Sequence record: MZ475892.1
Strand: one strand, 5' to 3'
Length of the DNA: 64,000 nucleotides
Part shown: positions 12,598-34,074 of the stretch, piece after piece
Position numbering within the stretch: position 1 is the first letter of the stretch
Layout of the letters: every line of letters starts with the position of its first letter
The notes under the pieces: generated by a model
Databases searched by the model: none
Seen by the model: only the letters and a program-made list of their open reading frames with translations
What the model was told of the DNA's origin: nothing
Position numbers and translations under genes: made by a program

Positions 12598-13368
12598 ATG
12601 AGCAATATCGATACCACAATGCCTGAAGGCAAATGGGAGTTCAACGAGTCGGTTGCTTGCGTGTTTGATAACATGCTGCAAAACTCCATCCCATCTTATG
12701 GCCGTATGCGTGACCTGACGTACCGTCTGGGTCGTCGCTTCGTAACTCCCGGTTCAGCTATCGTTGATCTCGGTGCTTCACTTGGCCGAGCTATCGAACC
12801 GTTTGCAAAAGAGTTCGGCAAGTATGACTACCATCATGCTGCTGACGCTCCTGGCGAAGACTACGAAACAGGTAATCACTATAGCCTGTATGAAGTAGCT
12901 CCTGCTATGCGTGAACGTCTGGTGCAGAATGAAGTGCTTCTCTCAGTGAATGCCAAACTGGAAAGTGAATCGCTGGTCGATGCAGACAGCTTCCTGTTTG
13001 ATGGCCAAGTGCATTGCTCGTTGATTCTGAGTGTGCTAACTCTCCAGTTCACGCCAATTGAACATCGTCAACACATTCTGGAAAACGTGTACAACTCACT
13101 GCAACCAGGCGGCGCATTCATCCTCGTTGAGAAGGTGTTAGGCGATAACAACTATCTCGACAAAATGCTGGTGGACACCTACTACCAGATGAAAGGCGGT
13201 AACGGTTACAGCGCCGAGTCGATTGCGACTAAACGTAAGTCATTGGAAGGCGTACTCGTTCCTGTTAAAGCAGCGTGGAACGAAGAACTGTTGCGTAAAG
13301 CAGGCTTCGGTCAGGTGGAGAGTTTCTACCGCGACCTGAACTTCGCAGGATGGATTGCTATTAAGTAA
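12598..13368 (+). CDS. cmoA: CmoA-like carboxy-S-adenosylmethionine synthase
   Basis: WEFNESVACVFDNMLQNSIPSY, DLGASLG, TLQF, LVEK, ATKRKSLEGV, NFAGWIAIK parallel CmoA motifs along the whole length. Confidence 0.85.
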   Translation: MSNIDTTMPEGKWEFNESVACVFDNMLQNSIPSYGRMRDLTYRLGRRFVTPGSAIVDLGASLGRAIEPFAKEFGKYDYHHAADAPGEDYETGNHYSLYEVAPAMRERLVQNEVLLSVNAKLESESLVDADSFLFDGQVHCSLILSVLTLQFTPIEHRQHILENVYNSLQPGGAFILVEKVLGDNNYLDKMLVDTYYQMKGGNGYSAESIATKRKSLEGVLVPVKAAWNEELLRKAGFGQVESFYRDLNFAGWIAIK

Positions 13369-13377
13369 GGAAATACT

Positions 13378-14640
13378 ATGAAAGTAAACGGGCGTATCTT
13401 AGCTATCGTCCCACACAAGACAATGCAAGACCGTACCAAGTCTGGTGTGGGTTCGTACATTGATGGGCTAGAGGCATACGGCTTCTGCGACTTTATCACG
13501 GACGGAGAGAACAGCTCCGTTACGAAAAGTCAGTGGTTCACTTACGGTGACACTACTCTCAGTGACGGTTATAAGATAGGGCATATCCAGAGCGAGTTGC
13601 TGATTGCACTTGAGCGCCTCCCATACCGTGCGATTATTTGCAGCACGTATGAGGCGATTGAAGCCTGTGTGTCTCTGGGACTGCCAAAGATTATGCCCGT
13701 TTACTATCGCACGCACAACAGCTTTTTGCTCACACAAGATCTCAAGGGTCTTGGTGCAGAGAAGATCCATCGTGCGTTGTTGCAAGCACGCGTCACAGGG
13801 CTGCGCATACTTGCTAACTGTGATTCGACTGCGATCAATCTTACTGAGCGCTATAAGACGCCAGCACACGTTGCCTACAACTCGTTCTCGGTGCCTGACT
13901 ACAACCCACCAGCTCGGCGTTCTCCGCAACTGTTGATTATCTGTCGCTATGAGAAGGTCAAGCGCACGCTGTTTGCTGCGCGTATTGCTGCTGCATCAGG
14001 ACTACCCGTTCGTGTTATGACAGGCAGTGATCGTCAAGCACGCAATTGGGAGAAAGAGCTGGCTGAGGCGGGCGTCAAAGAGTATACGGTCGTCAGTGGC
14101 CTTAGCGGCAAACAGAAACTCGAATTTATAGGCGCTTGCACCGTAGCCCTTTCTACTGCGAGCGTTGAATCATTTGCTAATGGTGTGCGTGAGTCTATCC
14201 CCTACTGTCCTACCTTTATCGTGCAAACATCCAAGTACGATTGGGCTAAGGACTATACGCGCTTCTGTACCGCCGACAAGCATGTTCATATCAGAACTGT
14301 TGATCGCGTATCGGACCAAGCCGTAGCTGAAATCGGAAGTGAGATAGCGCAAACAGCTACCACTCGTTATCTGACAGGACCTCAGCGTAAGCAGCTACTG
14401 ACTGCTTGGGCAAAGCAAGTTGATCGTGGTTGGTCCGACTTTGTCCAGAAGGCTGTTGTTGACGATGACGGCAAGCCGCTGCGCACCGAGCTGTATCAAG
14501 AACTGATCGACAAGTCAGAGATCGATTGGTCACAAACGCCCACGCTGATGCGTACTGTAAATGCGTTACATAAATGCCACGCTCGTTTGGGCCTGACATT
14601 TGATGGCACTAAAATCAAATATAAGAGGAAGCGCAAATGA
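13378..14640 (+). CDS. GT-B fold glycosyltransferase (GT4-like)
   Basis: 420 aa; ICRYEKVKR and STASVESFANGVRES resemble GT4 nucleotide-sugar-binding motifs. Confidence 0.65.
   Translation: MKVNGRILAIVPHKTMQDRTKSGVGSYIDGLEAYGFCDFITDGENSSVTKSQWFTYGDTTLSDGYKIGHIQSELLIALERLPYRAIICSTYEAIEACVSLGLPKIMPVYYRTHNSFLLTQDLKGLGAEKIHRALLQARVTGLRILANCDSTAINLTERYKTPAHVAYNSFSVPDYNPPARRSPQLLIICRYEKVKRTLFAARIAAASGLPVRVMTGSDRQARNWEKELAEAGVKEYTVVSGLSGKQKLEFIGACTVALSTASVESFANGVRESIPYCPTFIVQTSKYDWAKDYTRFCTADKHVHIRTVDRVSDQAVAEIGSEIAQTATTRYLTGPQRKQLLTAWAKQVDRGWSDFVQKAVVDDDGKPLRTELYQELIDKSEIDWSQTPTLMRTVNALHKCHARLGLTFDGTKIKYKRKRK
14555..14562 (+). promoter_or_regulatory. CTGTAAAT candidate phage promoter
   Basis: About 75 nt before ATG 14637. 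Confidence 0.5.
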
Positions 14641-15713
14641 GTGTTATCGGTGATATTTATAACATCCCACAACCTTTCGCAATGTATGTCGGGAATTGTG
14701 AGACGCGTGCTCAAGCCAAAGTTGCTGCGGGCACAATCGAGTGGGCGCCAGAGAAAGTGTGCTGCACCGTAGATGATGGTAACAACCTGTTCCCTAACGT
14801 ACCTTCAATCAACCCTGCTGACGTGCATAAGACAGATGCAGAAACTTTAGTGATTGGCTGTGCACCTTTCGGCGGCCGCATTGACGAGCACATGGACAAA
14901 GCTATTCGTAGCGCTATCTATCGTGGACGCAACATCGCTGCTGCTATGCATACGCGCCTGGCGGATAATCCTGAATACGTTGAGCTGGCTGATCGCTACA
15001 ACGTCAAGCTGTATGACTTCCGCCATCGTCCTGATGCGTACCCACTCGGTACTGGTGAGAAGCGTAGCGGTCTGCGTCTGTTAACTGTCGGTACTGATAG
15101 CTCATGCGGTAAGAAGTTTACCACGCTGTCTCTGTATCGTGAACTCAAAGCTATTCATGAAGCCACTACGTTCTGCTCTACTGGCCAGACGGGTTTCTTG
15201 ATTAGCGGTTGCGGTATCAACAACGACACGATTGTTGCCGACTTCCTTGCTGGTGCCGCTGAATCACTTTCGCCTGATGGTCCTGCTGATCATGTTTATC
15301 TGATTGAGGGTCAAGGCGCTATCACGCACCCAGCATACACAGGCGGCAGTATGAGTCTGATTGCTGGCTCGCAGCCTGATCATCTCATCCTGTGTCACGC
15401 ATGGAACCGTCAGAATCAGTTGGGCGTTAAGCGTAAGCCTGACCTTGATTTCGAGATGCGTGCTAACATTGAAGCGGCACGTATTCACGGTCTCAACCCG
15501 ACTTACATCGGTATCAGCATTAACTTCTCTGAGTGCGACCTCACCGCCGATGAGCAAGATAAAATCCTATACCAACTCGCATCAACGTATGAGATTCCCG
15601 TGTTCGACCCATCACAGGACACTTCTGTGTTGCGCGATCTCGCTCGTATGTTAGCAACTAAAGCCAAAGCAAGGAGCCTCGATGGCCAAGCATCAACTGC
15701 GCAAGCTGTTTGA
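14637..15713 (+). CDS. DUF1611 family P-loop protein (DgcN-like)
   Basis: LLTVGTDSSCGKKFTT, STGQTG, DFLAGAAE, IEGQGAITHPAY, GSQPDHLILCH. Confidence 0.88.
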   Translation: MSVIGDIYNIPQPFAMYVGNCETRAQAKVAAGTIEWAPEKVCCTVDDGNNLFPNVPSINPADVHKTDAETLVIGCAPFGGRIDEHMDKAIRSAIYRGRNIAAAMHTRLADNPEYVELADRYNVKLYDFRHRPDAYPLGTGEKRSGLRLLTVGTDSSCGKKFTTLSLYRELKAIHEATTFCSTGQTGFLISGCGINNDTIVADFLAGAAESLSPDGPADHVYLIEGQGAITHPAYTGGSMSLIAGSQPDHLILCHAWNRQNQLGVKRKPDLDFEMRANIEAARIHGLNPTYIGISINFSECDLTADEQDKILYQLASTYEIPVFDPSQDTSVLRDLARMLATKAKARSLDGQASTAQAV

Positions 15714-16557
15714 ACAGCATGTGAAAAAAGAAGTGAAAGCAGACAAGGTAGCTGTGCTGCTTTCATCTGGCCTCGATGGTTTGGTCAGTGCGTTAGCTGC
15801 ACACGACCTAGGCAAGAAGGTACATGCCTTCACATTCCAAATGGGTGACAACCCTAGCTTTGACAGTCGCCACGCACAGATCGTTGCACAGAAGATGGGA
15901 TGGGAGTTCACTCTCGTTAAAGTTCCCACCAGCGTGTCTGCTATCGCGTTAGCGTGGCGCGTGCTACACTCCAAGTATCGCTGCATCAAGAAGCGTGACT
16001 ATGAATGTGCGTACCCTATGGTCTATTGCTACAAGGCAATCAAAGACGCTGGGTATAAGTATGTGTTAAGCGGGCTGGTGGCCGATGGCTACTTCCTGTA
16101 TAACCGTAACACGCACATTCAGAAAATCAGCGGCCCGCACTCTGACGCTCAGAAGTATCATGAGTTCCGTACTCAATACTTTAGTCCGTGGCTTAAACAC
16201 GGTAAGAAGTCTCTGGGCGTTGACGGGTACAACCCGAGCGGTATGTTGCAGCATGAAATGTTGTGCGATAACTTCGGCCTGATTCACGTTAACCCGTGGA
16301 TGCAGAACAAGGTGTTTGACTACTTCATCAAATACACTTGGCAGGAGCTGAATCAGCCTAAGCAGAAGATGCCACTAACCGAAGCGTGGGCAGAACACAT
16401 TGCTCTTGTTGGTCATCGCCCACACAGGGGCTATCAGACAGAAGCCAAAGTGCCTGAATACTTTGAGCATCTGATCGATAACCCTGAGATTAACTTTAAC
16501 GGGCGCAAGCGCATCATGGACGTGGCACGCGACTGGTCCAAACGAGAGCCTGAATAA
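15682..16557 (+). CDS. asparagine-synthetase-like PP-loop ATP-dependent ligase lacking a glutaminase domain
   Basis: AVLLSSGLDG (SGGLDS variant), LSGLVADGYF, NPWMQNKV; 291 aa, no N-terminal Cys1 domain. Confidence 0.8.
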   Translation: MAKHQLRKLFEQHVKKEVKADKVAVLLSSGLDGLVSALAAHDLGKKVHAFTFQMGDNPSFDSRHAQIVAQKMGWEFTLVKVPTSVSAIALAWRVLHSKYRCIKKRDYECAYPMVYCYKAIKDAGYKYVLSGLVADGYFLYNRNTHIQKISGPHSDAQKYHEFRTQYFSPWLKHGKKSLGVDGYNPSGMLQHEMLCDNFGLIHVNPWMQNKVFDYFIKYTWQELNQPKQKMPLTEAWAEHIALVGHRPHRGYQTEAKVPEYFEHLIDNPEINFNGRKRIMDVARDWSKREPE

Positions 16558-16812
16558 ATGCATCCTGTTATCACAGACTTTCTTGGTCCTATCGTTAAGC
16601 GGCTGGGCTTATTCACTGCTATATTCGGTTTTGTCGGCGTGCTGCTGTCTGTGATCGCAGTGCTTGTGTGCCGCCCAGAAGTCCTTCAATACGAATACGA
16701 TACTGTAAATAGACTTCGTACTGAGGGTATTGTATTCTTGGGTAAAGGCGTTCTTGTTTACATCGTAGGCGAGATACTTGAAGGCACGTTCAAGTGGAGA
16801 AAAGATGATTAA
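16558..16812 (+). CDS. small membrane protein
   Basis: 84 aa with two hydrophobic stretches. Confidence 0.6.
   Translation: MHPVITDFLGPIVKRLGLFTAIFGFVGVLLSVIAVLVCRPEVLQYEYDTVNRLRTEGIVFLGKGVLVYIVGEILEGTFKWRKDD
16703..16710 (+). promoter_or_regulatory. CTGTAAAT candidate phage promoter
   Basis: About 95 nt before ATG 16805. Confidence 0.45.
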
Positions 16813-17068
16813 CAAATTCGTGATGAAGAAGACTCCGACCATTGAAGCCTGTCAGTGGAATGGAGAGAACAAGGAAGAGATTGAAGCCTTCCTTGGCGAT
16901 AGCGGATTCGTTGTTGGGCGTTACGTGCAGATTGGTGTTCTGGATAAATACCAGAAGCCAACTATTGCTAACGTAAGCGTAGGCAACTATGTGATCAAGC
17001 GCGATGATGGTAAGTTCTATGCCATTACTGCGCAAGATCTGTTTGAGAATTATGTATTAGCAGATTGA
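16805..17068 (+). CDS. conserved phage hypothetical protein
   Basis: IEACQWNGEN...VGNYVIKRDDGKFY pattern common in phage small proteins; GGAG RBS. Confidence 0.7.
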   Translation: MINKFVMKKTPTIEACQWNGENKEEIEAFLGDSGFVVGRYVQIGVLDKYQKPTIANVSVGNYVIKRDDGKFYAITAQDLFENYVLAD

Positions 17069-17075
17069 GGCCATA

Positions 17076-17528
17076 ATGAATCTGTTTTCTATTTTAAAAC
17101 AGCAAGTGAAGAAATCCCTGACGACCGAAGCAACGCTTGAGCCAGAAGTGCGCAAACACTTTGATTGGCGTTTCAGTGTTGACGTCAAAGGTCTGATGTA
17201 CATTGTAGGCAAGACGGGCGCTAACACCTGCTTCTATCTTGAGCCAGGTCACGTTGAGCCTACTGCCTGCTATCCTGATGAACTGCTTGCGAAGATTGAT
17301 CAGTGGGGCGCTGCTAAGTATGTGTCCTACGCTGTCTACTTCAAGAAGTTCAGTAGCCCTGTAGCTGAAAACATCAAGACGCTTGAGCAAGCCAAGACAG
17401 GCAAGCCTAAAGCGTTTAAGAAAGGCTACTTTATCTGTGGCGTAACACCGAAAGGTAAGCGCGTCAAACTGTGTCGTCTGCACAACAGCCTAAGCGGTAT
17501 GCAGTGGGTTGATGTAGACCAGAAGTAA
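17076..17528 (+). CDS. hypothetical protein
   Basis: 150 aa, GAGG RBS. Confidence 0.75.
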   Translation: MNLFSILKQQVKKSLTTEATLEPEVRKHFDWRFSVDVKGLMYIVGKTGANTCFYLEPGHVEPTACYPDELLAKIDQWGAAKYVSYAVYFKKFSSPVAENIKTLEQAKTGKPKAFKKGYFICGVTPKGKRVKLCRLHNSLSGMQWVDVDQK

Positions 17529-17542
17529 ACCAAGGAGCTTAT

Positions 17543-17863
17543 ATGATTAGCGACATTGACATTGGCCATTATTATAGTTCTGCGAGCGGTATACCGTTTC
17601 GCGTAAAAGAACGTGCAGCACACGGACAAGATTGTTCTCTGTCGATGATCGTATTTGAGAACGTGGAGGCAACTAAGGATTACCCTGTTGGTCAAACTTG
17701 GGTGCTTCCAGAATCTCTGTTCGTGAAACAGTATTCCGAATTTACGGAAGGAAAGTATCATGAACGAAACAACGCTCTTAGAGCATCTGAAAACAAGACA
17801 CTGGCAACCAGAGACGCATTTCGGGTGGCTTTCGCCGAAGACCCTGACAGTGCCACTGTATAG
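17543..17863 (+). CDS. DUF1653-like protein
   Basis: GHYYSSASGIPFRV...AAHG...IVF...WVLPESLF; AAGGAG RBS. Confidence 0.55.
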   Translation: MISDIDIGHYYSSASGIPFRVKERAAHGQDCSLSMIVFENVEATKDYPVGQTWVLPESLFVKQYSEFTEGKYHERNNALRASENKTLATRDAFRVAFAEDPDSATV

Positions 17864-18276
17864 CTTTGACCGACAGATGAGAGGCGTTCAAGTCTATACG
17901 CCTAGCGCACCGAAGAAAGACCCGAACCCCAAAGCGTGTCGTTACTTCACTCGCGTGTTCGGTGGCAAACAGTTGGTGTGGGGAACGGAAATTAGACCTA
18001 TACGGGCCGACCGTTTTCTTAACTGAGTCTGTGTTCAAAGCGTGTGCGCTACATCGTCTCGGTCTCAATGCGTGGTCTGTTTTAGGCTCGAACGTGAGTG
18101 ACTATTTATACCACCAGCTTAGTCTTCTTGACCTGCGTTTTGTTTGTCTAGGTGATGCGGATAAAGCTGGTGAGGAGTTCAGTCAGACGTTTGGTCGTGG
18201 TGCTGTTAGTGCCGACTTGGACGAGATGACTGATGAGCAGTTACTCGATTTAACTCTACCACTATTAAGGAAATAG
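17760..18276 (+). pseudogene. Toprim/primase-like gene interrupted by a frameshift
   Basis: ORF 17760..18026 (VPLYSFDRQMRGVQVY...VWGTE) continues in +1 frame as LDLYGPTVFLTESVFKA...GDADKAG; junction GAA-A-TTA at 17988-17994. Confidence 0.7.
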
Positions 18277-18277
18277 G

Positions 18278-18706
18278 ATGGAACATAAAGTTGTCGTGCG
18301 TATTCTCGGACCTGTTGGCAGCGGTAAGTCTTCTGTTTACGCCAAGCTCGTTAAAGGTCTGACTGATACTGGCGCTATCATCAAACACGCAGATGAGCAA
18401 GCGTGGAATATGCTGAATAACAGCGGTGAGGTAACTTCGGCCGACACGGTTCTCGATGAGTTTCGCACCGAAGTTACCTTCGAAGAAGTTGTGATTCGTG
18501 ACGACTACACCAAGTCTAAGAATCAGATCATGCAGTTCTTCGCGTACTCGCATCTGCCGCCTAACTTGCAAGCGATCAGTAAACCGATTGCGTTGCTCGC
18601 TCAGGAGATGGACCAGAATCTGCCTGATGGTGCTGAGAGAGTCGCTGGTCTGCGTAAGCTGCTTGAAGCGAAAGACTGTCTGGTTCGTGCGCTGGTAGCC
18701 AAGTAA
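18278..18706 (+). CDS. hypothetical protein: P-loop-like N-terminus plus conserved helical-hairpin C-terminal domain
   Basis: GPVGSGKS; QFFAYSHLPPNLQAISKP...ERVAGLRKLLEAKDCLVRA. Confidence 0.75.
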   Translation: MEHKVVVRILGPVGSGKSSVYAKLVKGLTDTGAIIKHADEQAWNMLNNSGEVTSADTVLDEFRTEVTFEEVVIRDDYTKSKNQIMQFFAYSHLPPNLQAISKPIALLAQEMDQNLPDGAERVAGLRKLLEAKDCLVRALVAK

Positions 18707-18720
18707 CTCGGAGAGCAAAC

Positions 18721-19110
18721 ATGCCTAATTTTATTCGCCCTCCTTCATTACTCAAGTCAGTGCCTACGTCGTCAACTGTAGAAGCAACTGACATTTTCGC
18801 ATCACTCGCACCTATCAACAACGTAATTAACCTAAGTGCCGCTCAAGCTCTGCGCCGTGAGCAAATCGGTGCTGGTCATGTTGAGCAGTTCTCTGAGGCT
18901 ATTGGTCTGCATCCAGAAGACCCTGCTCCTGAAAATGATCTTGTCAGCGTTCCAGCGATCACTTTCTCATTTGAAGGAGATGCATGTGAGACCTGGTATT
19001 TCTGCGGACCTGAACGTACTCTAGCTGAATGGGCTGTAGTGCGTGATGCCGTTGAACAATCTTTTGTTGATAATTCATACCATCATGATATGAACTTCGA
19101 AATCAACTAA
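18721..19110 (+). CDS. hypothetical protein
   Basis: 129 aa, GGAG RBS, followed by terminator. Confidence 0.7.
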   Translation: MPNFIRPPSLLKSVPTSSTVEATDIFASLAPINNVINLSAAQALRREQIGAGHVEQFSEAIGLHPEDPAPENDLVSVPAITFSFEGDACETWYFCGPERTLAEWAVVRDAVEQSFVDNSYHHDMNFEIN

Positions 19111-19116
19111 CAACAC

Positions 19117-19142
19117 AAAGGGTGGCTTCGGCTGCCCTTTTT
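19117..19142 (+). terminator. intrinsic terminator (copy 1 of repeated cassette)
   Basis: AAAGGGTGGC-TTCG-GCTGCCCTTTTT. Confidence 0.9.
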
Positions 19143-19146
19143 CGAT

Positions 19147-19154
19147 CTGTAAAT
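19147..19154 (+). promoter_or_regulatory. CTGTAAAT candidate phage promoter
   Basis: Intergenic, right after terminator, 30 nt before ATG 19185. Confidence 0.7.
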
Positions 19155-19184
19155 AACTCGTATAACATCTAACGAGAAGCTACC

Positions 19185-19586
19185 ATGAGACCTGAAAACA
19201 TTTCACGCACCTATCGCGTCGGTCAGTCTGACCTGGAGAAAGCACACAACGTCTGCGGAGAGAACAATGTAACACTCTCAGATGTGGTACGCAGATACAT
19301 CGAAAGAATCGTACTGACTGAGGGTGAGTTCCTTATGAGCGAGCGTAAGCACGTACCTGAGTCTCAACTGAATGTACGCCTGCCCTTTTACATTGCGCAC
19401 TCCTTTGCATCTGTGTGTAAGTCTCGTGATACGTTAGCCTCTAAAACCATTCTCAACTTTGTCAGGAATATTGCTCTTTCAGGTACTATCCCTGAGGAGT
19501 TAAAGTACGCCTCAGACACAGAGTTGCGTGCCTATATTACCTCCGAGCGCTCCCGCCTCGATGCACTGGAAGCAAAACTTAAATGA
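19185..19586 (+). CDS. tandem ribbon-helix-helix DNA-binding protein
   Basis: SRTYRV...TLSDVVRRYIERI and QLNVRLP...ASKTILNFVRNI. Confidence 0.55.
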   Translation: MRPENISRTYRVGQSDLEKAHNVCGENNVTLSDVVRRYIERIVLTEGEFLMSERKHVPESQLNVRLPFYIAHSFASVCKSRDTLASKTILNFVRNIALSGTIPEELKYASDTELRAYITSERSRLDALEAKLK

Positions 19587-20422
19587 TTCTAACTAGCCCC
19601 ATTCGCTATCAGGGCAACAAGCGCACTCTGATGCCTCTTATTCTTGAACATGCGCCTGTGAAGGATTGCGTTCGCATGATAGACGCATTCGGCGGTAGCG
19701 GTACTGTTGCGCTCAACATGCCTCACAAGTTTCGCATCTACAATGAATTGAGCACGCCTGTGTTTGAGATCGTCCAGTTGCTTGCGCATCAAGATCCGAA
19801 GAAAACGTTGGGTCAGATCAAGCGTATCGTCAAGCGTTTTTGTCTAACCAATAGCAGCCAAGACAACTACGACATGTTCCGCGCGTATGTGCAGAAGAAG
19901 CCTAGCCCTCTTCACCATTACATCGCACACAGGCATGCACGCTCTAACATGCTGCGCTTCAACCAGAAAGGCATCTACAACGTGCCGTTCGGCGAGCGGG
20001 GACTGATTGGCAAGTTCGATCAGCTCGAACAGGAGCTGGTGCAGTTCCACGAGCGTATGCAGAACACGCACATCACCAACATGCGCTACAACATGTTGCT
20101 CAAGTCTGTGTCAAAGCATATCGGACCTAACACGTTCATTTACTTTGACCCTCCGTATCTTGCTAGCGGTGCGATGCAATACGGTAAGTGGACTGAGCAC
20201 AACGAACGCAACCTGCTGTCCGTACTTGAGTATCTGAATCGTCAAGGCTGCCCGTGGATGTTGAGCAACGTTCTCCAACATCGGCATCACACGAACGACC
20301 TGCTCAAACGCTGGCTAAAGAAACACGCAACGACTGTCATCTATCCTGACAAGTCTTATTCAATGGCCAACTCTCATTCCGATAGTCACAGCACTATCGA
20401 GATCCTGGCAATGAACTACTGA
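19583..20422 (+). CDS. dam: DNA adenine methyltransferase (Dam/D12 class)
   Basis: PIRYQGNK, DAFGGSG, FNQKGIYNVPFG, YFDPPY. Confidence 0.92.
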   Translation: MILTSPIRYQGNKRTLMPLILEHAPVKDCVRMIDAFGGSGTVALNMPHKFRIYNELSTPVFEIVQLLAHQDPKKTLGQIKRIVKRFCLTNSSQDNYDMFRAYVQKKPSPLHHYIAHRHARSNMLRFNQKGIYNVPFGERGLIGKFDQLEQELVQFHERMQNTHITNMRYNMLLKSVSKHIGPNTFIYFDPPYLASGAMQYGKWTEHNERNLLSVLEYLNRQGCPWMLSNVLQHRHHTNDLLKRWLKKHATTVIYPDKSYSMANSHSDSHSTIEILAMNY

Positions 20423-20429
20423 GGTGCAT

Positions 20430-20894: not shown

Positions 20895-20895
20895 A

Positions 20896-21503: not shown

Positions 21504-21504
21504 T

Positions 21505-23335: not shown

Positions 23336-23720
23336 TCAGTTACGTGATCAATTGACCGAAGCTGAATACGCAGAACTTGAGCGCACGACAGCACGGTCAA
23401 TCATGGAACAAGTGTGGGCACTACGCGGCTGGACGGTTAAGCTCGACTGGTGCAACTATATGTGCGACGACGTTGATTGGTTATTCCATGGTAATGAACG
23501 TAAAGCACCGGTTGATCACGCTATGCCGAATTCTGGTGTTGGCACTAGCATTGAGCAGCATCGCCTTAATGTCGTGTTTACTCCTACTGAGGTTAGCGTT
23601 ACGAACTCACTGGTAGACAGCCCTGTCACGGGCACTGGTATGTCACTGCGCTGTGCTTACTGCGCGTGGCTTTTAGCAATCGAAAAACAAAAGGCTGCCA
23701 ATGCGCTGCAATCTGACTGA
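23322..23720 (+). CDS. hypothetical protein
   Basis: 132 aa, start uncertain. Confidence 0.6.
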   Translation: MSSVNQLRDQLTEAEYAELERTTARSIMEQVWALRGWTVKLDWCNYMCDDVDWLFHGNERKAPVDHAMPNSGVGTSIEQHRLNVVFTPTEVSVTNSLVDSPVTGTGMSLRCAYCAWLLAIEKQKAANALQSD

Positions 23721-24216
23721 ACTGCCTATCAAACTCGATCAGGCTGAAAACATTATGGGCAGCGTGTTTGCGCTTGCTGCTGGCTCTAAGTCCAAACGCC
23801 GTGCTACTGCTGCAATGCTCATCCATTTCCATGAAGGCTACCCTACGATCATCAGTAGTGGTGTCAATGGTACTGTGCCTGGTGAAAGCAACGTGTGTGA
23901 GAATGAAGACCTCACTCTGACGTTTGCTCACGTCACCCACGCAGAAGCTAACTGCCTCAATCGCATGGACGAATACAGTCTGTGGCCAGAAGAAGAGGAC
24001 ATCCTGTTTTGTACTGACAGCCCCTGTCCTGATTGTTTGCAGCAACTCGAATCTGCTGGTGTGCAGACCATCGTTTATGCGCGTGAATACAGACTCACAG
24101 AGCACCTGGATAAGTCTGCTATTCGCATGTATTGTCTCGATATTGAGAACGTGAGGGCGTCTTTGCTGAAATCTGTAAATCGTATAGACGAAGTGATTGC
24201 AACCACACCTACTTAA
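23701..24216 (+). CDS. dCMP deaminase
   Basis: SSGVNGT, HAEAN, TDSPCPDC Zn-binding motifs, IVYAREYR. Confidence 0.92.
   Translation: MRCNLTELPIKLDQAENIMGSVFALAAGSKSKRRATAAMLIHFHEGYPTIISSGVNGTVPGESNVCENEDLTLTFAHVTHAEANCLNRMDEYSLWPEEEDILFCTDSPCPDCLQQLESAGVQTIVYAREYRLTEHLDKSAIRMYCLDIENVRASLLKSVNRIDEVIATTPT
24173..24180 (+). promoter_or_regulatory. CTGTAAAT candidate phage promoter
   Basis: About 55 nt before ATG 24234. Confidence 0.55.
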
Positions 24217-27822: not shown

Positions 27823-28136
27823 CACCCCTTATTATGTTTGACGCACGAACCATTCGCGTACTCAAGCAAAGTTTCGGTCAGGACAAACCTTTCGTTGTTG
27901 CTGGGCTGAACCCAATCGTTGGCAACAAAGGTGATCGTGTTACTCTCGCTAATGCCTGTAGCGTAGTCGCCATCCCTCGTGTGATGGGACTTGAAGTAGG
28001 TCAAGTGCTTTACGTAGGAACGGATGATGAAGTCTACGCATGGCCTTCTGATATGGTGATGGAATTTGCTTCTGTCTCTGATAACCAAACTCGGACCATT
28101 GCTTATGCATTGCGTCCAATACTCTCGGATGATTAA
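27819..28136 (+). CDS. hypothetical protein
   Basis: GGAG RBS before ATG 27819. Confidence 0.65.
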   Translation: MTPLIMFDARTIRVLKQSFGQDKPFVVAGLNPIVGNKGDRVTLANACSVVAIPRVMGLEVGQVLYVGTDDEVYAWPSDMVMEFASVSDNQTRTIAYALRPILSDD

Positions 28137-28138
28137 AA

Positions 28139-29239
28139 ATGACAGGTCCTCTCGATCTCACTAACCCACAGCACTTCGAACTGTACTCGCTGCACAGCGT
28201 TGATGCACAGTATATCAATCTGTGTGACGCACTCCTCACTCAGGGTACGCACGAATCTGACCCAGAGCGCACTACTGATACGTGGCATACGCTGATCGGT
28301 ATTGGCTTCCAGTTGTCTAACACCAACATCGCTTTCCCTGCGCTGCTGTCTAAGCGTGTCAACGTCCGTGCAGCTATCGATGAATCATGCTGGTTCGCAC
28401 GCGGTGAAACGAACATCGCAACTCTCGGTTCTAAAATCTGGAACGAGTGGGCAGACGAAGAAGGTGAGAACGGTCCTATCTACGGCTTCCAGTATCGAAA
28501 CTGGCCTGACATTAAAGTGTTCAACACTGTCGAAGGTATGATTGAGCAGCACATCCCACCAGCAATGATTGAGCGCATCTCGAAAGAGATCAACCGCATG
28601 AAGGCGCAGGGCTATATCGAAACTGCGTTGCCTGATGGTCGCGTGCTGTATGAAGGCTATATCGATCAGTACGCTGATGCACTACGTCAAATCATGGCGC
28701 GTAGTCGTAGCCGCCGCATTCGTGTGCAAGCGTTCAACCCTGGTTACGTTGGTATGCAGAGCCTGCCTCCGTGTCACACTGAGTTTGAGTTCAACGTGAC
28801 CAAAGCTACTGCGTATGAAATTGCGCAGATGGAAGCACGCTCAATGCGCCCTGACGCTGACTCACTGCATATCGTGGTGACCATGCGCTCAAACGACGCG
28901 CTCTTGGGCAGGCCATTCAACATCGTTGGCTACAGCGCCATGCACCAGTTGTTTGCGAAGTGGGCGGGTCTGAACGTTGGTTCGTTTACTCTGAATGTGA
29001 CCAATATGCACATGTACGATCACCACCGCGAAGCGTATGCACAACAGCGTGAGCAGTGGCTGGAACTACAGACGCAGATGCAGACGACAGGCAAACCTGT
29101 TGTTTACCCTACCCTCGAAATCACTGACGACATTCTGGGCCTGACGCCAGAAGAGCTGCTGGATAACGTCAACGTCGATTGGTTCGAGCTGGTGGACTAC
29201 TCTCCTAAACCTGCTGTTAAAGGACGCGTAACCAAATGA
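28139..29239 (+). CDS. thyA: thymidylate synthase
   Basis: GPIYGFQYRNW, SRR, LPPCH, MRSNDALLGRPFN (Asn, dUMP-type), HMYDHH. Confidence 0.93.
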   Translation: MTGPLDLTNPQHFELYSLHSVDAQYINLCDALLTQGTHESDPERTTDTWHTLIGIGFQLSNTNIAFPALLSKRVNVRAAIDESCWFARGETNIATLGSKIWNEWADEEGENGPIYGFQYRNWPDIKVFNTVEGMIEQHIPPAMIERISKEINRMKAQGYIETALPDGRVLYEGYIDQYADALRQIMARSRSRRIRVQAFNPGYVGMQSLPPCHTEFEFNVTKATAYEIAQMEARSMRPDADSLHIVVTMRSNDALLGRPFNIVGYSAMHQLFAKWAGLNVGSFTLNVTNMHMYDHHREAYAQQREQWLELQTQMQTTGKPVVYPTLEITDDILGLTPEELLDNVNVDWFELVDYSPKPAVKGRVTK

Positions 29240-29898: not shown

Positions 29899-30806
29899 AA
29901 CTACTTGCACTTATTCCAGCTGCTACCACCAATGTTTTCCGCACGCTGCATTGTGTAGGCACGGCAGAAGAGTTCCCTGTAGGCGAGCATCCTAAGTGGT
30001 CTGGCTTTGGTTTGAATATGACTAACGTCAAAATCATTCCTGACCTGGCTAAAGACGCCGTGCCTGATTCGTTCTATGTTACTATCGATAGCCACCTCGA
30101 CTGGTCTGTTGATCTTGACCGTATCGATACGTTCAGCGCTGATTATCTCATCTGGTGCGGTAAGCATACGCCTTCAATTGAAGCTGTGCTCGAAGCCCAC
30201 ATGATTAAAGGCCAGCTGCCGAATCTGGTGCAGGACTTCGATGCTTTTGTCGCTGATCTGCAAGAGCGTCTGGACAACATGACCAGCCTAGCCAAAGATC
30301 GTATGACCATCTCAGGCAGCACGCTGATCGATAGCGACACCACAGCCAAATACAACTTGTGGGCTATCTATCGTCACTGTCTGATGTTAGACAACAAGAT
30401 GGTCCTGCTGTACGGTAAAGACAATCACATCCATGTGTCCGACACGCACGTATCTGAAAAGGGTATCGGCTGGTGGTTGACCGAGCACAACAAACACATG
30501 ATGAGCATTGCACAGCAAAACGATCTGCTGGCCGCTTACATTACGTTTGAGCGCGATAGCTCTGGCTATACGTTTGTTGGTGCTGACGGTACTCAGGTTA
30601 AACGTCCTGTCGAGAGCAGCGAGTTCATGCACATGGCGCATCACGGCCTGTTCCCTAAAGTGGTAGTGCGTGAAGACGCAGACGGCCGTAACTTTGAACT
30701 GTCGTTTGATTACGCCGAATACTTCCCGCAAGCGTATCACGATTTCGTCAATCATGCGTGGGCCGGCCGTTCTGATCGTTCACGCGATTTGGTTCGCTTC
30801 GTCTGA
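29895..30806 (+). CDS. hypothetical protein
   Basis: 303 aa, ATGA overlap. Confidence 0.8.
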   Translation: MKLLALIPAATTNVFRTLHCVGTAEEFPVGEHPKWSGFGLNMTNVKIIPDLAKDAVPDSFYVTIDSHLDWSVDLDRIDTFSADYLIWCGKHTPSIEAVLEAHMIKGQLPNLVQDFDAFVADLQERLDNMTSLAKDRMTISGSTLIDSDTTAKYNLWAIYRHCLMLDNKMVLLYGKDNHIHVSDTHVSEKGIGWWLTEHNKHMMSIAQQNDLLAAYITFERDSSGYTFVGADGTQVKRPVESSEFMHMAHHGLFPKVVVREDADGRNFELSFDYAEYFPQAYHDFVNHAWAGRSDRSRDLVRFV

Positions 30807-30828
30807 TCGTTGCGCTGTCTGCTGTCAG

Positions 30829-30834
30829 TAATTT
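30829..30834 (+). promoter_or_regulatory. TAATTT candidate late promoter element
   Basis: Intergenic, about 24 nt before ATG 30858. Confidence 0.5.
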
Positions 30835-30857
30835 GAAGCTACTATAGGAGACAGCGC

Positions 30858-31196
30858 ATGAAATATGATAAGACCAAAGACTACCAACCGTTCAAGTATC
30901 TTGAGCCGGACCCAAAGGCTCCAAGAGTAGGCTTCTACGGTTCGACTGGCCACACTGTCACAAAGGACGTTCTGATAGGGCAGGACGTATGCGAGTTTGA
31001 GTTCAAGCCTGAAGAGTTGAACAATATGAATCGCGGTACGCTGCTCTTCCGTGCTAAAGATAGTGGCGGAACTATTGTCGTAAAGAAATGCTCTGTGCTT
31101 GGATTGAAAATGGTAATTACGCTAGAGAGAAGGGTGATTCAGTTCGGCAAGGTTCAAGCTGAATGGATGACCACATCCCGACTGTATAACTACTAA
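30858..31196 (+). CDS. hypothetical protein
   Basis: 112 aa, AGGAG RBS. Confidence 0.75.
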   Translation: MKYDKTKDYQPFKYLEPDPKAPRVGFYGSTGHTVTKDVLIGQDVCEFEFKPEELNNMNRGTLLFRAKDSGGTIVVKKCSVLGLKMVITLERRVIQFGKVQAEWMTTSRLYNY

Positions 31197-31204
31197 CTGT
31201 AAAT
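31197..31204 (+). promoter_or_regulatory. CTGTAAAT candidate phage promoter
   Basis: Intergenic, about 35 nt before ATG 31239. Confidence 0.65.
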
Positions 31205-31238
31205 ACATTGTACAGAAGCAACTACAAGAGAAAAGAGA

Positions 31239-31937
31239 ATGGCAAAAATTGCTAAAGCAAAGGAAGGGAAAAAGAAAAGCAACCCTATGTTGATTGACCT
31301 GAAAAAGTTCAAGTCAGTTAAACAGCTTAAGGGTGCGAAGTACAACCCTCGTTTCATTACAGACAGCCGACTGAGAGCGCTCGAAGGTTCTTTGGGCAGC
31401 TTCGGTGATTTGTCTGGCGTGGTGTTCAACAACAGCGTAGACAGTGGCGTATTGATCTCAGGCCACCAGCGTCTCAAGTCGATTGAGAAGTGGGACTCGC
31501 GCATTGAGATTCAACAAACGTCTGACAAGTACGGCACGGTAGCGTTGGGTTATATCCATGCTACCAGCGCCAAAGGTAAAACGATCAGCATCCCACTGCG
31601 TATCGTTAACTGGTCAGATAAGAAAGTGGAGTTTGCTGCTAACATTGCTGCGAATGCCCACGGCGGTGAGTTCGATAACAAAAAGCTCGCGTCTCTTGTT
31701 GAGAAGCTGGACCTGACTACAATCAAGCCAGCTCTTATCGGGCTTGACCCGTTAGAGATTCGCGGCCTGCAACAGACGCTGAGCAAACAAGCTATCGTCG
31801 AGCAGGAAAAGCGTGTTGGTAAAACAACAGGCAAAATGAACGGCAGTACTGGCGAGTTCAAAGAGTACACGACTGATGAAGTTGGTACTGCGCTGACCTG
31901 CACCTGCCCACGTTGTGGCTTTAAGTTCGAGGGATAA
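31239..31937 (+). CDS. ParB/Srx-like nuclease domain protein with C-terminal Zn ribbon
   Basis: YNPRFI...GSFG...LISGHQRL; CPRCG at C-terminus. Confidence 0.8.
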   Translation: MAKIAKAKEGKKKSNPMLIDLKKFKSVKQLKGAKYNPRFITDSRLRALEGSLGSFGDLSGVVFNNSVDSGVLISGHQRLKSIEKWDSRIEIQQTSDKYGTVALGYIHATSAKGKTISIPLRIVNWSDKKVEFAANIAANAHGGEFDNKKLASLVEKLDLTTIKPALIGLDPLEIRGLQQTLSKQAIVEQEKRVGKTTGKMNGSTGEFKEYTTDEVGTALTCTCPRCGFKFEG

Positions 31938-31938
31938 C

Positions 31939-34074
31939 ATGATCATCAAGCCGCCTACAATGAAAGAGATTAATAAGCTGCCCAAGCCTTGGTCAGGTAT
32001 GAGTTTCTTTGCAGGTTGCGGTGGTTCATCTACCGGTCACAAGATGGCCGGTATTAACATCCTACTGAGCAACGAGTTCGTGGACGCGGCTCGTGAATCG
32101 TATGAAGCGAACCATCCAACAACCAAAGTGTTGCCCCACGATATTCGTCGTCTTGACCCGAAAAAGCTGCTTAGCTATTGCGGCCTGAGTCAGGGCGAAC
32201 TGGACTTGCTCGACGGCAGTCCTCCGTGCTTCACCGAAGACACGTTCATTCATACCGACACTGGTATGAAGTTCATCACTGATATGCGCATCGGTGACTT
32301 CGCTATGACCTCTGTTGGTAAGTATCATCCAGTGTATGACACGATGGTACGTCCGTATGACGGTCAGATGCACAGAATTGAAACGCTGCTTGGTCAGAAC
32401 AATGCAACGCCTGAACATCCGTTCTTTGTTCGTCGTCAGAATGAAGAAACTGGCGGGTACAGTGAGCCGTTCTGGTGTGACGCTAAAGATGTGCAGGAAG
32501 GTGACCTGTTAGGTACGCCTCGTGTTACGCCTGATATGGGCGAAGCACACACGCATGAGATTATCTCGTCGTTGACTGCGCAGCTTGTGCGTTGGATTGC
32601 ATTGCCTGAGTTCTGGTGGCTGATTGGTCACTGGTGCAATCGCGGTGCAATCGATAAGATTCGTGGTGTCGATGTTATTCAATTCACCTCGATGACAGCG
32701 ATGGAAAACTCGCTGGTGGAACAAGCGTTCGACGTGCTCAAGTTAAGCAGCATCAACAGCGCTTCGTCCGACATGGGCGTTCATCGTAAGACCGTTCGTG
32801 TTGTTATGGACACAGACCTGTTGCTGTTCTTGCGTATGTTTATCGCGCAGGGCAAGAAGTCTATGTCCCGCCGTCTGCCTGGCATGATCTTCCATCTGGC
32901 TAAAGAGCTGAAACAGCAATTCATTCTCGGCTATCTGGGTCGTGATTACGTCACAGCAATGGGCGTTGGTCATGCGTTAGAGGCTGACTCAAAGCGCTTC
33001 CTAGTTGAGATGAATTACCTGTGCTGCTCTGCGTTCAACAGACCGCTGTTCGATGCAATGTTGTTCACTGACTTGCATTACGGTAGTCCGATGTTACCAC
33101 CGAGTCGCTTCATTACCAAAGAGCACATCGGCTTCCTGTTCTTGCAAGAAGAGGTTAATTTCTTCTTTGAGTTCGAGCCGGAAGACCCGCATCTGTGGGT
33201 TGAAGTGATTGAGAACTTTACGCATCATGAAACGTGCAACGTCTATAACTTCTCAGTCAGTGTTGATGAGACGTATGTTGCTAACGGCATGGTCGTGCAT
33301 AACTGCAAAGGGTTCTCGACTGCTGGCGTGAAAGAAGACGGCTGGGGCAAAGAGGTTAAGTACAGCGGCAACAAGTATCAGCAAGTCGATGACCTGTTCG
33401 ATCAGTATTGCCGTATGCTCAAGCACATGCAGCCTAAAACGTTCACTGCGGAAAACGTTAGTGGCCTCGTTAAAGGTGCGTCGAAGGGTTACTTCATTGA
33501 AATCATGAAGACCTTTGATCAGCTGGGCTACTATGTGCGAGCGCCGTTGCTTAATGCTGCGTGGCTTGGTGTGCCTCAGTCTCGTGAGCGTATCATCTTT
33601 ATGGGTGTGCGCAAAGACGTGGCGAAAGCACTCGGCTATAAAACTGCGTTGACTGCTGTGCCTGATGTAACACCTCAATCAAGCATGGCGTTCCTTGCAG
33701 ATGCATTGCCGAACATTCGTCGTTATAAAGGTACGGAGCGTGACATTATCAAGTATCTGCCTGCTGTTAACGGCCCGATGCCTACGATTACCGCTGCTGA
33801 TGCTATCGCATACGAAACAGCACGCTTCTCCTCTGCTGGCTTCATTGAAGACGACAAAGGGCACAGACGCAAGCTGACGATTGACGAACTCAAAGTTGTG
33901 TCAGGCATGCCTAGTGATTACGTGCTCACAGGTAAGTTTGAAGAACAATGGGAACGTCTCGGTCGTGTGTGCGTACCTGCAATGACGTGTGCTGCGGCAA
34001 GCGCGTTGATACGCCATGTGCTTGAGCCTTACGCGAAGCTGCGTAAAAAGAAACCTGGGGATCGTTTTCGTTAA
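31939..34074 (+). CDS. C5-cytosine methyltransferase family enzyme with intein; probable carboxymethyltransferase
   Basis: FFAGCGG (I), DIRRL, GSPP|C (IV), ENVSG (VI), QSRER (VIII), RKLTIDE (IX), ERLGRVCVP (X with Arg for Asn); GAGGGA RBS. Confidence 0.9.
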   Translation: MIIKPPTMKEINKLPKPWSGMSFFAGCGGSSTGHKMAGINILLSNEFVDAARESYEANHPTTKVLPHDIRRLDPKKLLSYCGLSQGELDLLDGSPPCFTEDTFIHTDTGMKFITDMRIGDFAMTSVGKYHPVYDTMVRPYDGQMHRIETLLGQNNATPEHPFFVRRQNEETGGYSEPFWCDAKDVQEGDLLGTPRVTPDMGEAHTHEIISSLTAQLVRWIALPEFWWLIGHWCNRGAIDKIRGVDVIQFTSMTAMENSLVEQAFDVLKLSSINSASSDMGVHRKTVRVVMDTDLLLFLRMFIAQGKKSMSRRLPGMIFHLAKELKQQFILGYLGRDYVTAMGVGHALEADSKRFLVEMNYLCCSAFNRPLFDAMLFTDLHYGSPMLPPSRFITKEHIGFLFLQEEVNFFFEFEPEDPHLWVEVIENFTHHETCNVYNFSVSVDETYVANGMVVHNCKGFSTAGVKEDGWGKEVKYSGNKYQQVDDLFDQYCRMLKHMQPKTFTAENVSGLVKGASKGYFIEIMKTFDQLGYYVRAPLLNAAWLGVPQSRERIIFMGVRKDVAKALGYKTALTAVPDVTPQSSMAFLADALPNIRRYKGTERDIIKYLPAVNGPMPTITAADAIAYETARFSSAGFIEDDKGHRRKLTIDELKVVSGMPSDYVLTGKFEEQWERLGRVCVPAMTCAAASALIRHVLEPYAKLRKKKPGDRFR
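32227..33303 (+). mobile_element. intein (359 aa) with degenerate LAGLIDADG region
   Basis: CFTEDT start, ATPEHPF block B, VVHN end, Cys +1 is the catalytic Cys; LIGHWCNRG and FILGYLGRD remnants. Confidence 0.92.

Follow-up and report, generated by a model that had tools for sequence, protein, structure and literature searches.

Two gene clusters of Erwinia phage pEa_SNUABM_34

The DNA analysed here, referred to below as the window, comprises bases 1-64000 of the genome of Erwinia phage pEa_SNUABM_34 (MZ475892.1, 264 kb), an Erwinia jumbo phage whose nearest relative in RefSeq, pEa_SNUABM_7, is placed in the genus Snuvirus. Over the region compared (bases 12000-20000), the window is 100% identical to the database record at the same coordinates. 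Our subject is six genes in two clusters on the + strand, which bears nearly all genes of this region. We consider it quite probable that these genes constitute one post-replicative pathway, proposed below as a five-step scheme, in which cytosine in phage DNA would be converted to 5-carboxymethylcytosine (5cxmC) and then hypermodified.

An earlier interpretation made from the letters alone (hereafter the sequence-only reading) had described an operon encoding a CmoA homologue, a GT-B glycosyltransferase, a DUF1611 protein and an asparagine-synthetase-like ligase, and a second locus encoding a ParB-like protein and a cytosine-C5 methyltransferase with an Asn-to-Arg change in motif X. All six open reading frames (ORFs) are present in the ORF list where that reading had placed them, and every one of these assignments was borne out by the comparisons presented below. 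The features are as follows, where SAM denotes S-adenosylmethionine.

12598..13368, + strand: cmoA homologue, 256 amino acids, predicted carboxy-SAM (Cx-SAM) synthase (TIGR00740, PDB 4GEK)
13378..14640, + strand: GT-B (GT4-like) glycosyltransferase (GT), 420 amino acids, with a basic C-terminal tail (AlphaFold2 and Foldseek)
14637..15713, + strand: DUF1611 (DgcN-like) protein, 358 amino acids, predicted acyl-CoA-dependent N-acyltransferase (PF17396 and PF07755)
15682..16557, + strand: CmoY-type ATP-dependent amide ligase, 291 amino acids (PF00733, homology to SpCmoY)
31239..31937, + strand: ParB-like DNA-binding protein, 232 amino acids (PHROG 620)
31939..34074, + strand: cmoX with intein, a 711-amino-acid precursor counted from the ATG at 31939 (PF00145 on both flanks)
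31939..32226, + strand: cmoX N-extein, 96 amino acids, with Ser-Pro-Pro at its C-terminal end
32227..33303, + strand: intein, 359 amino acids, directly ahead of the catalytic Cys (Hint_2, Intein_splicing, TIGR01443)
33304..34074, + strand: cmoX C-extein, 256 amino acids, beginning with the catalytic Cys and carrying the motif X Arg (best PDB match 8YF3)

The first four genes are tightly packed, with intergenic spacings of 9, -4 and -32 nucleotides, and a single nucleotide separates the ParB-like gene from cmoX. The distance between the two loci, given as 16 kb in the sequence-only reading, was an approximation; 14.7 kb lie between the stop codon of the ligase gene and the start of the ParB-like gene.

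Relationship to a characterised carboxymethylation pathway

A pathway composed of CmoA, CmoX and CmoY was described in December 2025 for Synechococcus phage S-B43 (Yang et al., Nat Commun 2025; PMC12783734), and the cyanophage pathway of Cx-SAM synthase, C5-methyltransferase and amide ligase that the sequence-only reading had mentioned thus exists. In S-B43, CmoA produces Cx-SAM, CmoX forms 5cxmC in GC contexts, and the asparagine-synthetase-like CmoY ligates glycine to 5cxmC to yield 5-glycylcarboxymethylcytosine (PMC12783734). Arg350 of CmoX touches the carboxylate of the cofactor at the position where M.HhaI has Asn304; wild-type SpCmoX took only Cx-SAM, and its R350N variant took neither cofactor (PMC12783734). 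The same study lists 5,615 candidate CmoX sequences, often accompanied by CmoA, a ligase and a ParBc protein, and predicts further amide variants without naming the tailoring enzymes (PMC12783734). It also cites M.MpeI N374K, which the sequence-only reading had named as well, as a case in which a basic residue at the Asn position of motif X permits use of Cx-SAM; that enzyme resembles the phage protein in this respect and differs from it by having Lys rather than Arg, by acting at CG sites, and by being engineered and outside any pathway.

The protein encoded by the first gene of the window cluster is evidently a relative of CmoA. It matches TIGR00740 (E = 1.5e-39, 136.1 bits), E. coli CmoA in PDB entry 4GEK (E = 3.9e-28) and PHROG 4752 (E = 3e-78), and its identity to the assayed SpCmoA of S-B43 is 28%. 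Alignment with 4GEK places the cofactor-binding residues of the E. coli enzyme (Byrne et al., PMC3663124) opposite identical residues of the phage protein, such that Y39, D62, G64, S66, A70, F137 and E164 correspond to Y34, D57, G59, S61, A65, F151 and E178, and the carboxylate-binding R199 corresponds to R213. Asn132 is not kept, as V146 occupies the aligned position, and residues 67-138 form a divergent segment of ~70 residues with an insertion.

The methyltransferase at the second locus is interrupted by an intein, and its extein pieces were searched one at a time and never joined. Residue numbers given here for Arg684 and for the intein are counted from the GTG at 31915. Matches to PF00145 lie on both flanks of the intein. 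The best solved relative of the C-extein is SpCmoX (8YF3, E = 5.8e-33), with M.HaeIII at E = 3.4e-12, and Arg684 in motif X occupies the position of Arg350 in SpCmoX and of the Asn in M.HaeIII, as the sequence-only reading had proposed for this position. The N-extein is 52% identical to residues 19-97 of SpCmoX and keeps F25, E47, F48 and D69, which contact the adenine and ribose of Cx-SAM. A Glu-Arg-x-Gly-Arg string is common to CmoX of the window, of S-B43, of the Pseudomonas jumbo phage PaBG and of two metagenomic homologues from ENA. From this similarity, assignment of the window protein as a CmoX homologue is supported, and it is predicted to be a cytosine-C5 carboxymethyltransferase. Between motifs VIII and IX the protein departs from SpCmoX, and therefore the GC specificity may not hold for it.

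The protein encoded just upstream of cmoX is ParB-like by its matches to PHROG 620 (E = 2e-31) and to PHROG 498 (E = 2e-17), the latter representing the N-terminal part of ParB-methyltransferase fusions, though no Pfam family, PF02195 included, matches it at E <= 0.01. The ParB-like gene adjoins cmoX in the clade of Erwinia, Dickeya and Yersinia phages, in PaBG, and in the metagenomic loci L009, L011, L022 and L023 (examined loci are designated by L numbers); at L019 it lies ~1.7 kb upstream of cmoX. The ParB association recalls that of the many CmoX contigs in the S-B43 study. The window genes further resemble those of S-B43 in belonging to the same three enzyme families, in the Ser-Pro-Pro-Cys motif and motif X Arg of CmoX, and in a ligase that lacks a glutaminase domain. 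They differ in being split over two loci and in the intein at the catalytic Cys.

Co-occurrence of cmoA with the Arg-type methyltransferase in related phages, as the sequence-only reading had anticipated, is strict. Searches with CmoA, the ParB-like protein, the intein and the C-extein each match an identical set of 48 Erwinia, 2 Dickeya (AD1) and 1 Yersinia records, and six further Dickeya records that resemble bases 12000-20000 of the window in DNA sequence are without all of these genes. A published comparison points the same way, as a methyltransferase, an asparagine synthase and a cytosine methylase are listed as shared by phages AD1 and Y3 and missing in JA11 (Day et al., Table 5; PMC6143709).

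These patterns bear on the proposal that cmoA instead serves formation of the tRNA nucleoside 5-carboxymethoxyuridine (cmo5U) or depletion of SAM, with the methyltransferase acting as an ordinary 5-methylcytosine enzyme and no carboxymethylation of DNA taking place. The RefSeq label of the phage cmoA is 'tRNA methyltransferase', SAM depletion was raised as a possible side role by Yang et al. (PMC12783734), and some phages carry cmoA without a close cmoX. However, Arg684 matches the R350 of an enzyme that accepts Cx-SAM exclusively, cmoA and cmoX are all-or-none in the clade, and by our grouping they adjoin one another in PaBG, L010, L019, L022 and L023. We regard this proposal as extremely improbable. 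In the phage collection searched, cmoA is also present in 14 Pseudomonas phage records and in several Staphylococcus phage records, and of these only the two PaBG records have a close cmoX at E <= 1e-15. Phage cmoA genes may thus serve other partners or roles as well.

An intein placed directly before the catalytic cysteine

The intein spans residues 105-463 (nucleotides 32227-33303). From the translation, it begins with Cys, carries Thr-x-x-His at residues 165-168, ends with His-Asn and is followed by a +1 Cys. It matches Hint_2, exceeds the cut-off for the C-terminal splicing region TIGR01443 (17.2 versus 15.6 bits) and falls just under that for Intein_splicing PF14890 (34.8 versus 35.8 bits). 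The exteins abut at P97|C98 of SpCmoX and at positions 70|71 of the PF00145 profile, such that the Ser-Pro-Pro-Cys catalytic motif is divided, with Ser-Pro-Pro on the N-extein and Cys on the C-extein, and is whole only after splicing. The +1 nucleophile of the intein is the catalytic Cys of the methyltransferase. Because the intein precedes this residue, the unspliced precursor is without a contiguous active site.

An intein occupies the identical site in all 51 gene-bearing records (48 Erwinia, 2 Dickeya and 1 Yersinia). Identity to the window in the other genera is 62-66% for the intein and 82-87% for the C-extein. The shared site, together with this degree of identity across genera, indicates that the intein is old and inherited. 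Outside this clade, cmoX of PaBG has no intein, and the near-identical ENA contigs L009 and L011 differ at this site, where one carries an unrelated intein (19% identity) and the other has none.

A DUF1611 protein paired with the amide ligase

The ligase of the window matches PF00733 (Asn_synthase, E = 1e-13) and shares 33% identity with SpCmoY in a 275-residue alignment (E = 2e-50). It covers only residues 234-394 of AsnB, and thus represents the synthetase domain without the glutaminase domain. No match was found for it in the PDB by sequence; an AlphaFold2 model with a predicted local distance difference test score (pLDDT) of 94.7 was compared by Foldseek, for which the top matches are AsnB (1CT9, TMq 0.70), human ASNS, beta-lactam synthetase and carbapenam synthetase, all of which are amide synthetases that form acyl-adenylates. 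The core steps of the pathway (Cx-SAM, 5cxmC and the amide) are therefore each supported by homology to an assayed enzyme. The window ligase and SpCmoY belong to different clades, and the former has a 13-residue insertion and departs from the latter at residues 171-183 and in a basic segment near 244-256. These differences, together with the strict pairing of this ligase clade with DUF1611 described below, suggest that its amine substrate is something other than glycine.

The gene ahead of the ligase encodes both domains of the DUF1611 family, DUF1611_N (PF17396) and DUF1611 (PF07755), with E = 2e-46. Its best solved relative is PDB entry 7XRJ (E = 4e-53 over residues 10-326), which according to a preprint citing Yu et al. 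2023 is a D-glutamate acetyltransferase. This enzyme, DgcN (EC 2.3.1.312), acts in a DgcN-DgcA route in which D-glutamate is converted via N-acetyl-D-glutamate. Both domains of the phage protein align with it, and by its scores the phage protein is a paralogue within the DUF1611 family rather than a DgcN orthologue. The settings also differ: DgcN serves D-glutamate catabolism together with DgcA, and the phage gene resides among genes for DNA modification. We predict that the phage protein is an acyl-CoA-dependent N-acyltransferase.

Once an amino acid is attached to 5cxmC via its alpha-amine, no amine remains for acylation, and therefore the DUF1611 protein would need either a different acceptor or to act before ligation. 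The acyl acceptor may be another amine, such as that of a side chain or an amino sugar, or the protein may prepare the amine donor.

A glycosyltransferase recognised by its fold

The 420-amino-acid protein has no match by sequence in Pfam, NCBIfam, PHROGs or the PDB. A profile search with this protein recovered 231 relatives, and an AlphaFold2 model built from a 42-sequence alignment (pLDDT 91.9, predicted template modelling score 0.89) gives a fold that we assign with confidence to the GT-B/GT4 type. The top 50 Foldseek matches in the PDB are GT-B enzymes, mostly retaining members of GT4 (probability 1.0, TM 0.5-0.6), and include GlgM, BshA, MshA, TarM, SdgB and SenB. Two glutamates in the C-terminal domain, eight positions apart, are conserved among the 42 sequences, with E264 invariant and E272 present in >= 90%. 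Although the window protein itself does not match PF00534, its relatives P0018 and P0022 pass that family's gathering score of 26.4 bits (31.7 and 26.7 bits). As in CmoX, the C-terminal tail is basic, and in each of the two proteins Lys or Arg occupies 7 of the 15 last residues.

Among known enzymes, the T4 alpha- and beta-glucosyltransferases, BshA and MshA are the natural points of comparison, with which the phage protein shares the GT-B fold, the GT4-signature glutamates and the context of phage DNA modification. It would differ from the T4 enzymes in its acceptor, which for them is 5-hydroxymethylcytosine (5hmC) and for the window protein is presumed to be the group carried on 5cxmC.

In T-even phages, GT-B enzymes glucosylate 5hmC. 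By a T4-style explanation unrelated to 5cxmC, the GT of the window would glycosylate a 5-hydroxymethylpyrimidine made by the ThyA-like enzyme encoded at 28139-29239. This ThyA homologue (366 amino acids), which may be a plain thymidylate synthase or a dUMP hydroxymethylase, has two insertions relative to solved enzymes, at approximately residues 125-173 and 223-240, and a cyanophage 'DNA alpha-GT' among the structural matches of the GT would fit as well. However, both the catalytic Cys and, at the aligned position, the Asn typical of thymidylate synthases are kept, on which grounds we rejected the protein as a deoxycytidine monophosphate (dCMP) hydroxymethylase and consider a competing pre-replicative modification of cytosine unlikely. 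The thyA gene sits with a dCMP deaminase gene, as for the ordinary supply of thymidine monophosphate; the scan of ORFs showed neither a 5-hydroxymethyluracil kinase nor a pyrophosphorylase; and the synteny of the GT is with cmo genes, not with thyA. An origin of the acceptor from this enzyme is, in our estimate, very unlikely.

A scan of IMG/VR for this GT family recovered Erwinia phages only, and a scan of JGI metagenomes recovered one further locus. A distant family member, P0076 (619 amino acids, L024:1255-3114), is a fusion of a ParB N-terminal domain with a GT, and in P0104 (617 amino acids) the GT match lies similarly distant from the N-terminus, so that it is possibly a second fusion of this kind. 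Many DNA methyltransferases are likewise fused to a ParB N-terminal domain. The only context of the ParB-GT fusion examined is phage-like and has no cmo genes.

Conserved gene neighbourhoods

The arrangements of these genes were collected from contigs with genes for GT and ligase relatives, and by tblastn with the window proteins. Two phages provide reference orders, which are ParB-cmoX-cmoA-x-ligase, contiguous, in PaBG, and cmoA-cmoY-cmoX in S-B43. The metagenomic architectures are listed here.

ENA L009-L011: ParB-cmoX (with or without intein)-GT-DUF1611-ligase-cmoA
ENA L022: ParB-cmoX-cmoA-GT-DUF1611-racemase-ligase
Logan L019: ParB ... cmoX-DUF1611-racemase-ligase-cmoA
Logan L023: ParB-cmoX-DUF1611-ligase-cmoA
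Logan L006-L008: cmoA-x-GT-DUF1611-racemase-ligase-DAHP synthase
L017 and L021: GT-DUF1611-ligase ... GNAT
L018: DUF1611-ligase
L020: DUF1611-racemase-ligase

Among the cultured relatives, four types of cassette can be distinguished.

cmoA-GT-DUF1611-ligase: pEa_SNUABM_34 and seven other pEa_SNUABM phages, including pEa_SNUABM_7
cmoA-GT-DUF1611-racemase-ligase: the pEa_SNUABM_3 group
cmoA-DUF1611-ligase: AD1, Alexandra and others
cmoA and a divergent ligase (23-29% identical), with neither GT nor DUF1611: Y3, pEa_SNUABM_5, phB78 and Yen9-02

The proposal that a single pathway is spread over two loci and extended by a GT and DUF1611 gains from these lists, as evident by the contiguous blocks at L009-L011 and L022. 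PaBG likewise shows the two Erwinia loci as one unit, with a ParB-cmoX pair (42% and 48% identity) and a cmoA (42%) resembling those of the window; it differs in having no intein, GT or DUF1611 and a ligase of only 24% identity. In all 11 of the 11 architectures that carry a ligase of the window type (46-85% identity), the DUF1611 gene lies directly before the ligase gene or one racemase-like gene away. The GT is present in 6 of the 11 and the racemase-like gene in 5 of the 11. The divergent ligases of S-B43, PaBG and Y3 are never found with DUF1611. The window ligase clade thus departs from the S-B43 arrangement in being always paired with DUF1611 and often accompanied by a racemase-like gene and a GT4 enzyme.

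The gene found between DUF1611 and the ligase in five lineages encodes a pyridoxal-phosphate enzyme resembling alanine or serine racemases, at these positions.

L002:3824-4759, racemase-like gene
L006:12322-13287, racemase-like gene
L019:6064-7008, racemase-like gene
L020:6099-7001, racemase-like gene
L022:6055-7032, racemase-like gene

This neighbour, and the use of a D-amino acid by the only characterised DUF1611 enzyme, suggest that the adduct contains a group derived from a D-amino acid.

A narrower explanation for these neighbourhoods is that only the three-step core acts on DNA, and that the GT and DUF1611 act on a metabolite, a protein or the cell envelope, with the operon reflecting co-expression. 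The nearest solved structures to the GT (BshA, MshA, TarM and SdgB) belong to enzymes that glycosylate small molecules, teichoic acid or proteins, and the characterised DUF1611 enzyme uses a free amino acid. However, independent lineages (L009-L011 and L022) have the GT and DUF1611 genes embedded between cmoX on one side and the ligase or cmoA gene on the other, DUF1611 strictly co-varies with one ligase clade, and the GT has a basic tail as in CmoX as well as ParB_N fusions in its wider family. We consider restriction of the DNA pathway to its core unlikely, while noting that the GT and DUF1611 steps are inferred from conserved synteny and fold only.

Other neighbouring genes of these modules are also of note. 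A 287-amino-acid 3-deoxy-D-arabino-heptulosonate 7-phosphate (DAHP) synthase is encoded directly after the ligase at L006:14162-15025 and also at L008:4509-5372. It scores 180 bits against TIGR00034 (cut-off 173), with the match beginning at approximately position 47-54 of the profile and the N-terminal part missing. This enzyme could raise shikimate flux and thereby feed prephenate, the co-substrate of CmoA, the supply of which was left open by Yang et al. (PMC12783734). In Y3, a 2-oxoglutarate-Fe(II) oxygenase is encoded just downstream of the divergent ligase (L003:3095-3733), which suggests that the same handle may be tailored in yet another way. In one jumbo-phage lineage, two genes past the GT-DUF1611-ligase block, there is a gene for a GNAT acetyltransferase (L017:10557-11465 and L021:8192-9100).

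A proposed pathway to an elaborated cytosine

In the scheme we favour, the CmoA homologue would first turn SAM and prephenate into Cx-SAM. Splicing of the intein would join Ser-Pro-Pro to the catalytic Cys and complete the active site of CmoX, which, aided by the ParB-like protein and with Arg684 holding the Cx-SAM carboxylate, would then place the carboxymethyl group on C5 of cytosine in double-stranded phage DNA. The CmoY-type ligase would adenylate the new carboxylate and couple an amine to it. The group appended is probably not plain glycine, because the ligase clade always occurs with DUF1611 and about half of its lineages have a racemase-like gene; from this gene neighbourhood, a moiety derived from a (D-)amino acid, N-acylated or otherwise processed by the DUF1611 protein, would be more likely. 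In the last step, the GT4-type glycosyltransferase with its basic tail would attach a sugar. The product would be a bulky adduct of cytosine, previously undescribed, that impedes restriction enzymes and further defences directed at DNA, a role we infer by analogy with the resistance of 5cxmC DNA to HhaI (PMC12783734).

For the adduct in virions, our working proposal, which we hold tentatively and would not be surprised to see overturned, is 5cxmC joined by an amide to a (possibly D-) amino-acid group that is N-acylated by the DgcN-like protein and glycosylated by the GT4-type enzyme. Mycothiol synthesis, by analogy only, combines the same three kinds of enzyme, namely a GT4 glycosyltransferase, an ATP-dependent amide ligase and an acetyl-CoA N-acetyltransferase.

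The order of events could also be reversed, such that DUF1611, with the racemase where present, acts before the ligase and makes its amine donor, for example an N-alpha-acylated D-diamino acid that is coupled via its side-chain amine. DgcN works on a free D-amino acid, and 5 lineages have the racemase-like gene, with the order DUF1611-racemase-ligase fixed, both of which would suit such a route; the window, however, is without a racemase. This sequence of steps strikes us as somewhat unlikely, albeit a serious competitor.

Several observations weigh against the scheme of a single elaborated pathway. The CmoA homologue misses the equivalog cut-off of TIGR00740 (136.1 versus 193.3 bits), as do the CmoA-like proteins of L006 and L010, and for 12 Pseudomonas phage records with cmoA no close cmoX is found at E <= 1e-15. 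Competence of the intein for splicing is predicted from its conserved residues only. The DUF1611 protein scores 289.8 bits against NF041892 (DgcN), under the 480-bit equivalog cut-off, and the sole characterised enzyme of the family acetylates the alpha-amine of free D-glutamate. The GT has no direct Pfam match and is dispensable in 5 of the 11 architectures. Three groups of loci (L017/L021, L018 and L020) show no cmoA or cmoX within the 7-10 kb sampled. In the window, 14.7 kb separate the two loci, and the sequence motif they share is not significant, with 5 copies of the heptamer where 6.4 are expected and hence no enrichment. Lastly, the order and substrates that we assign to the ligase, DUF1611 and GT steps are guesses.

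An account of the core pathway, including its occurrence across phages and the association with ParB, was already published in December 2025. The text of that paper contains no mention of Erwinia phages, glycosyltransferases, DUF1611, acetyltransferases or inteins (PMC12783734), and our search of later papers found no mention of them either. The published account covers neither the extension by DUF1611, racemase and GT4 genes nor the intein that precedes the catalytic Cys, nor the DAHP synthase gene that adjoins one of the modules. That 5cxmC occurs naturally in DNA was first demonstrated in December 2025, and the glycine amide is its only known derivative. The recurrent module of DUF1611, with or without a racemase-like gene, the amide ligase and an optional GT4 would point to further and larger adducts of cytosine, two or three at the least.

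If the scheme is correct, it would provide the first glycosylated amino-acyl DNA base and a pathway in which splicing of a protein at its catalytic cysteine acts as a gate, and the DUF1611 family would gain its first role in DNA modification and a second biological context. Related phages would constitute a natural gradation from simpler to more elaborate forms, varying in GT, racemase, oxygenase and DAHP synthase, and the cultured jumbo phages of Erwinia, Dickeya and Yersinia, which differ in their tailoring genes, offer a ready comparison series for nucleoside analysis. Such bases shape the resistance of phages to restriction and other DNA-targeting defences; these phages are under development against fire blight. 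Such bases can also bias the sequencing of phage DNA, and they are potential enzymatic tools for site-specific functionalisation of DNA.

Upstream sequences and neighbouring genes

Three further features precede the two clusters.

12548..12597, + strand: intergenic gap with GTAATTT (12558-12564), ahead of cmoA, a possible promoter region
30807..30857, + strand: intergenic gap with a second GTAATTT (30828-30834), ahead of a 112-amino-acid ORF
30858..31196, + strand: 112-amino-acid ORF heading the second locus, of doubtful membership in the module

The ORF at 30858..31196 has no match in Pfam, NCBIfam or PHROGs, and no homologue of it lies beside ParB-cmoX in PaBG or in the metagenomic modules. 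Its presence affects the claim of the sequence-only reading that both transcription units start behind the same TAATTT motif. GTAATTT does occur at both loci, at 12558 and 30828, in gaps of ~50 nucleotides and 39 and 29 nucleotides before an ATG; the second copy, however, heads the 112-amino-acid ORF (30858) and not the ParB-like gene. As the heptamer is not enriched in the window (see above), a role of the motif as a shared promoter is not supported statistically. The string GGTAATTTCTG is also found ahead of cmoA in pEa_SNUABM_3 and pEa_SNUABM_7, and GTAATTT precedes the 112-amino-acid ORF in pEa_SNUABM_7 as well. The weak sigma-70-like site found at 12521-12550 does not exceed chance, and around both loci neither sigma-70-like nor terminator-like sites exceed the expectation from shuffled sequence.

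Immediately past the first cluster, an 84-amino-acid ORF with a hydrophobic segment (16558-16812) begins at the stop codon of the ligase gene. Among the loci examined, only pEa_SNUABM_7 (L012) has a homologue, which places this ORF outside the conserved module, and in the pEa_SNUABM_3 group a 206-amino-acid protein occupies its place. The window was searched for this 206-amino-acid neighbour and for the racemase and DAHP synthase of the relatives, and none was found.

Between the two loci lie genes for a D12-class (Dam-type) N6-adenine DNA methyltransferase (19583-20422) and for the dCMP deaminase (23701-24216). Because of the former, the virion DNA of pEa_SNUABM_34 likely carries N6-methyladenine (6mA) as well.

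Outside the window, a homologue of the radical-SAM protein AD1_267 is encoded at ~221 kb of the phage genome (MZ475892.1 220832-221845; L025:19743-21230). Day et al. report the same presence pattern for AD1_267 as for cmoA, the ligase and cmoX (PMC6143709). We did not retain this protein as a member of the pathway, as it is found in only 44 Erwinia, 2 Dickeya and 1 Yersinia records and the pattern may reflect shared ancestry.

By eye, a CTGT ... TAAWT-like string recurs in + strand gaps of the window, for example as CTGTAAATA, CTGTTTAATTT and CTGTCAGTAATTT. The gaps that contain it are the following.

5366-5402, + strand: gap with CTGT ... TAAWT-like string
12548-12597, + strand: gap with the string, ahead of cmoA
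19111-19184, + strand: gap with the string
30807-30857, + strand: gap with the string, ahead of the 112-amino-acid ORF
31197-31238, + strand: gap with the string
38866-38948, + strand: gap with the string

This string may represent a promoter element of the phage.

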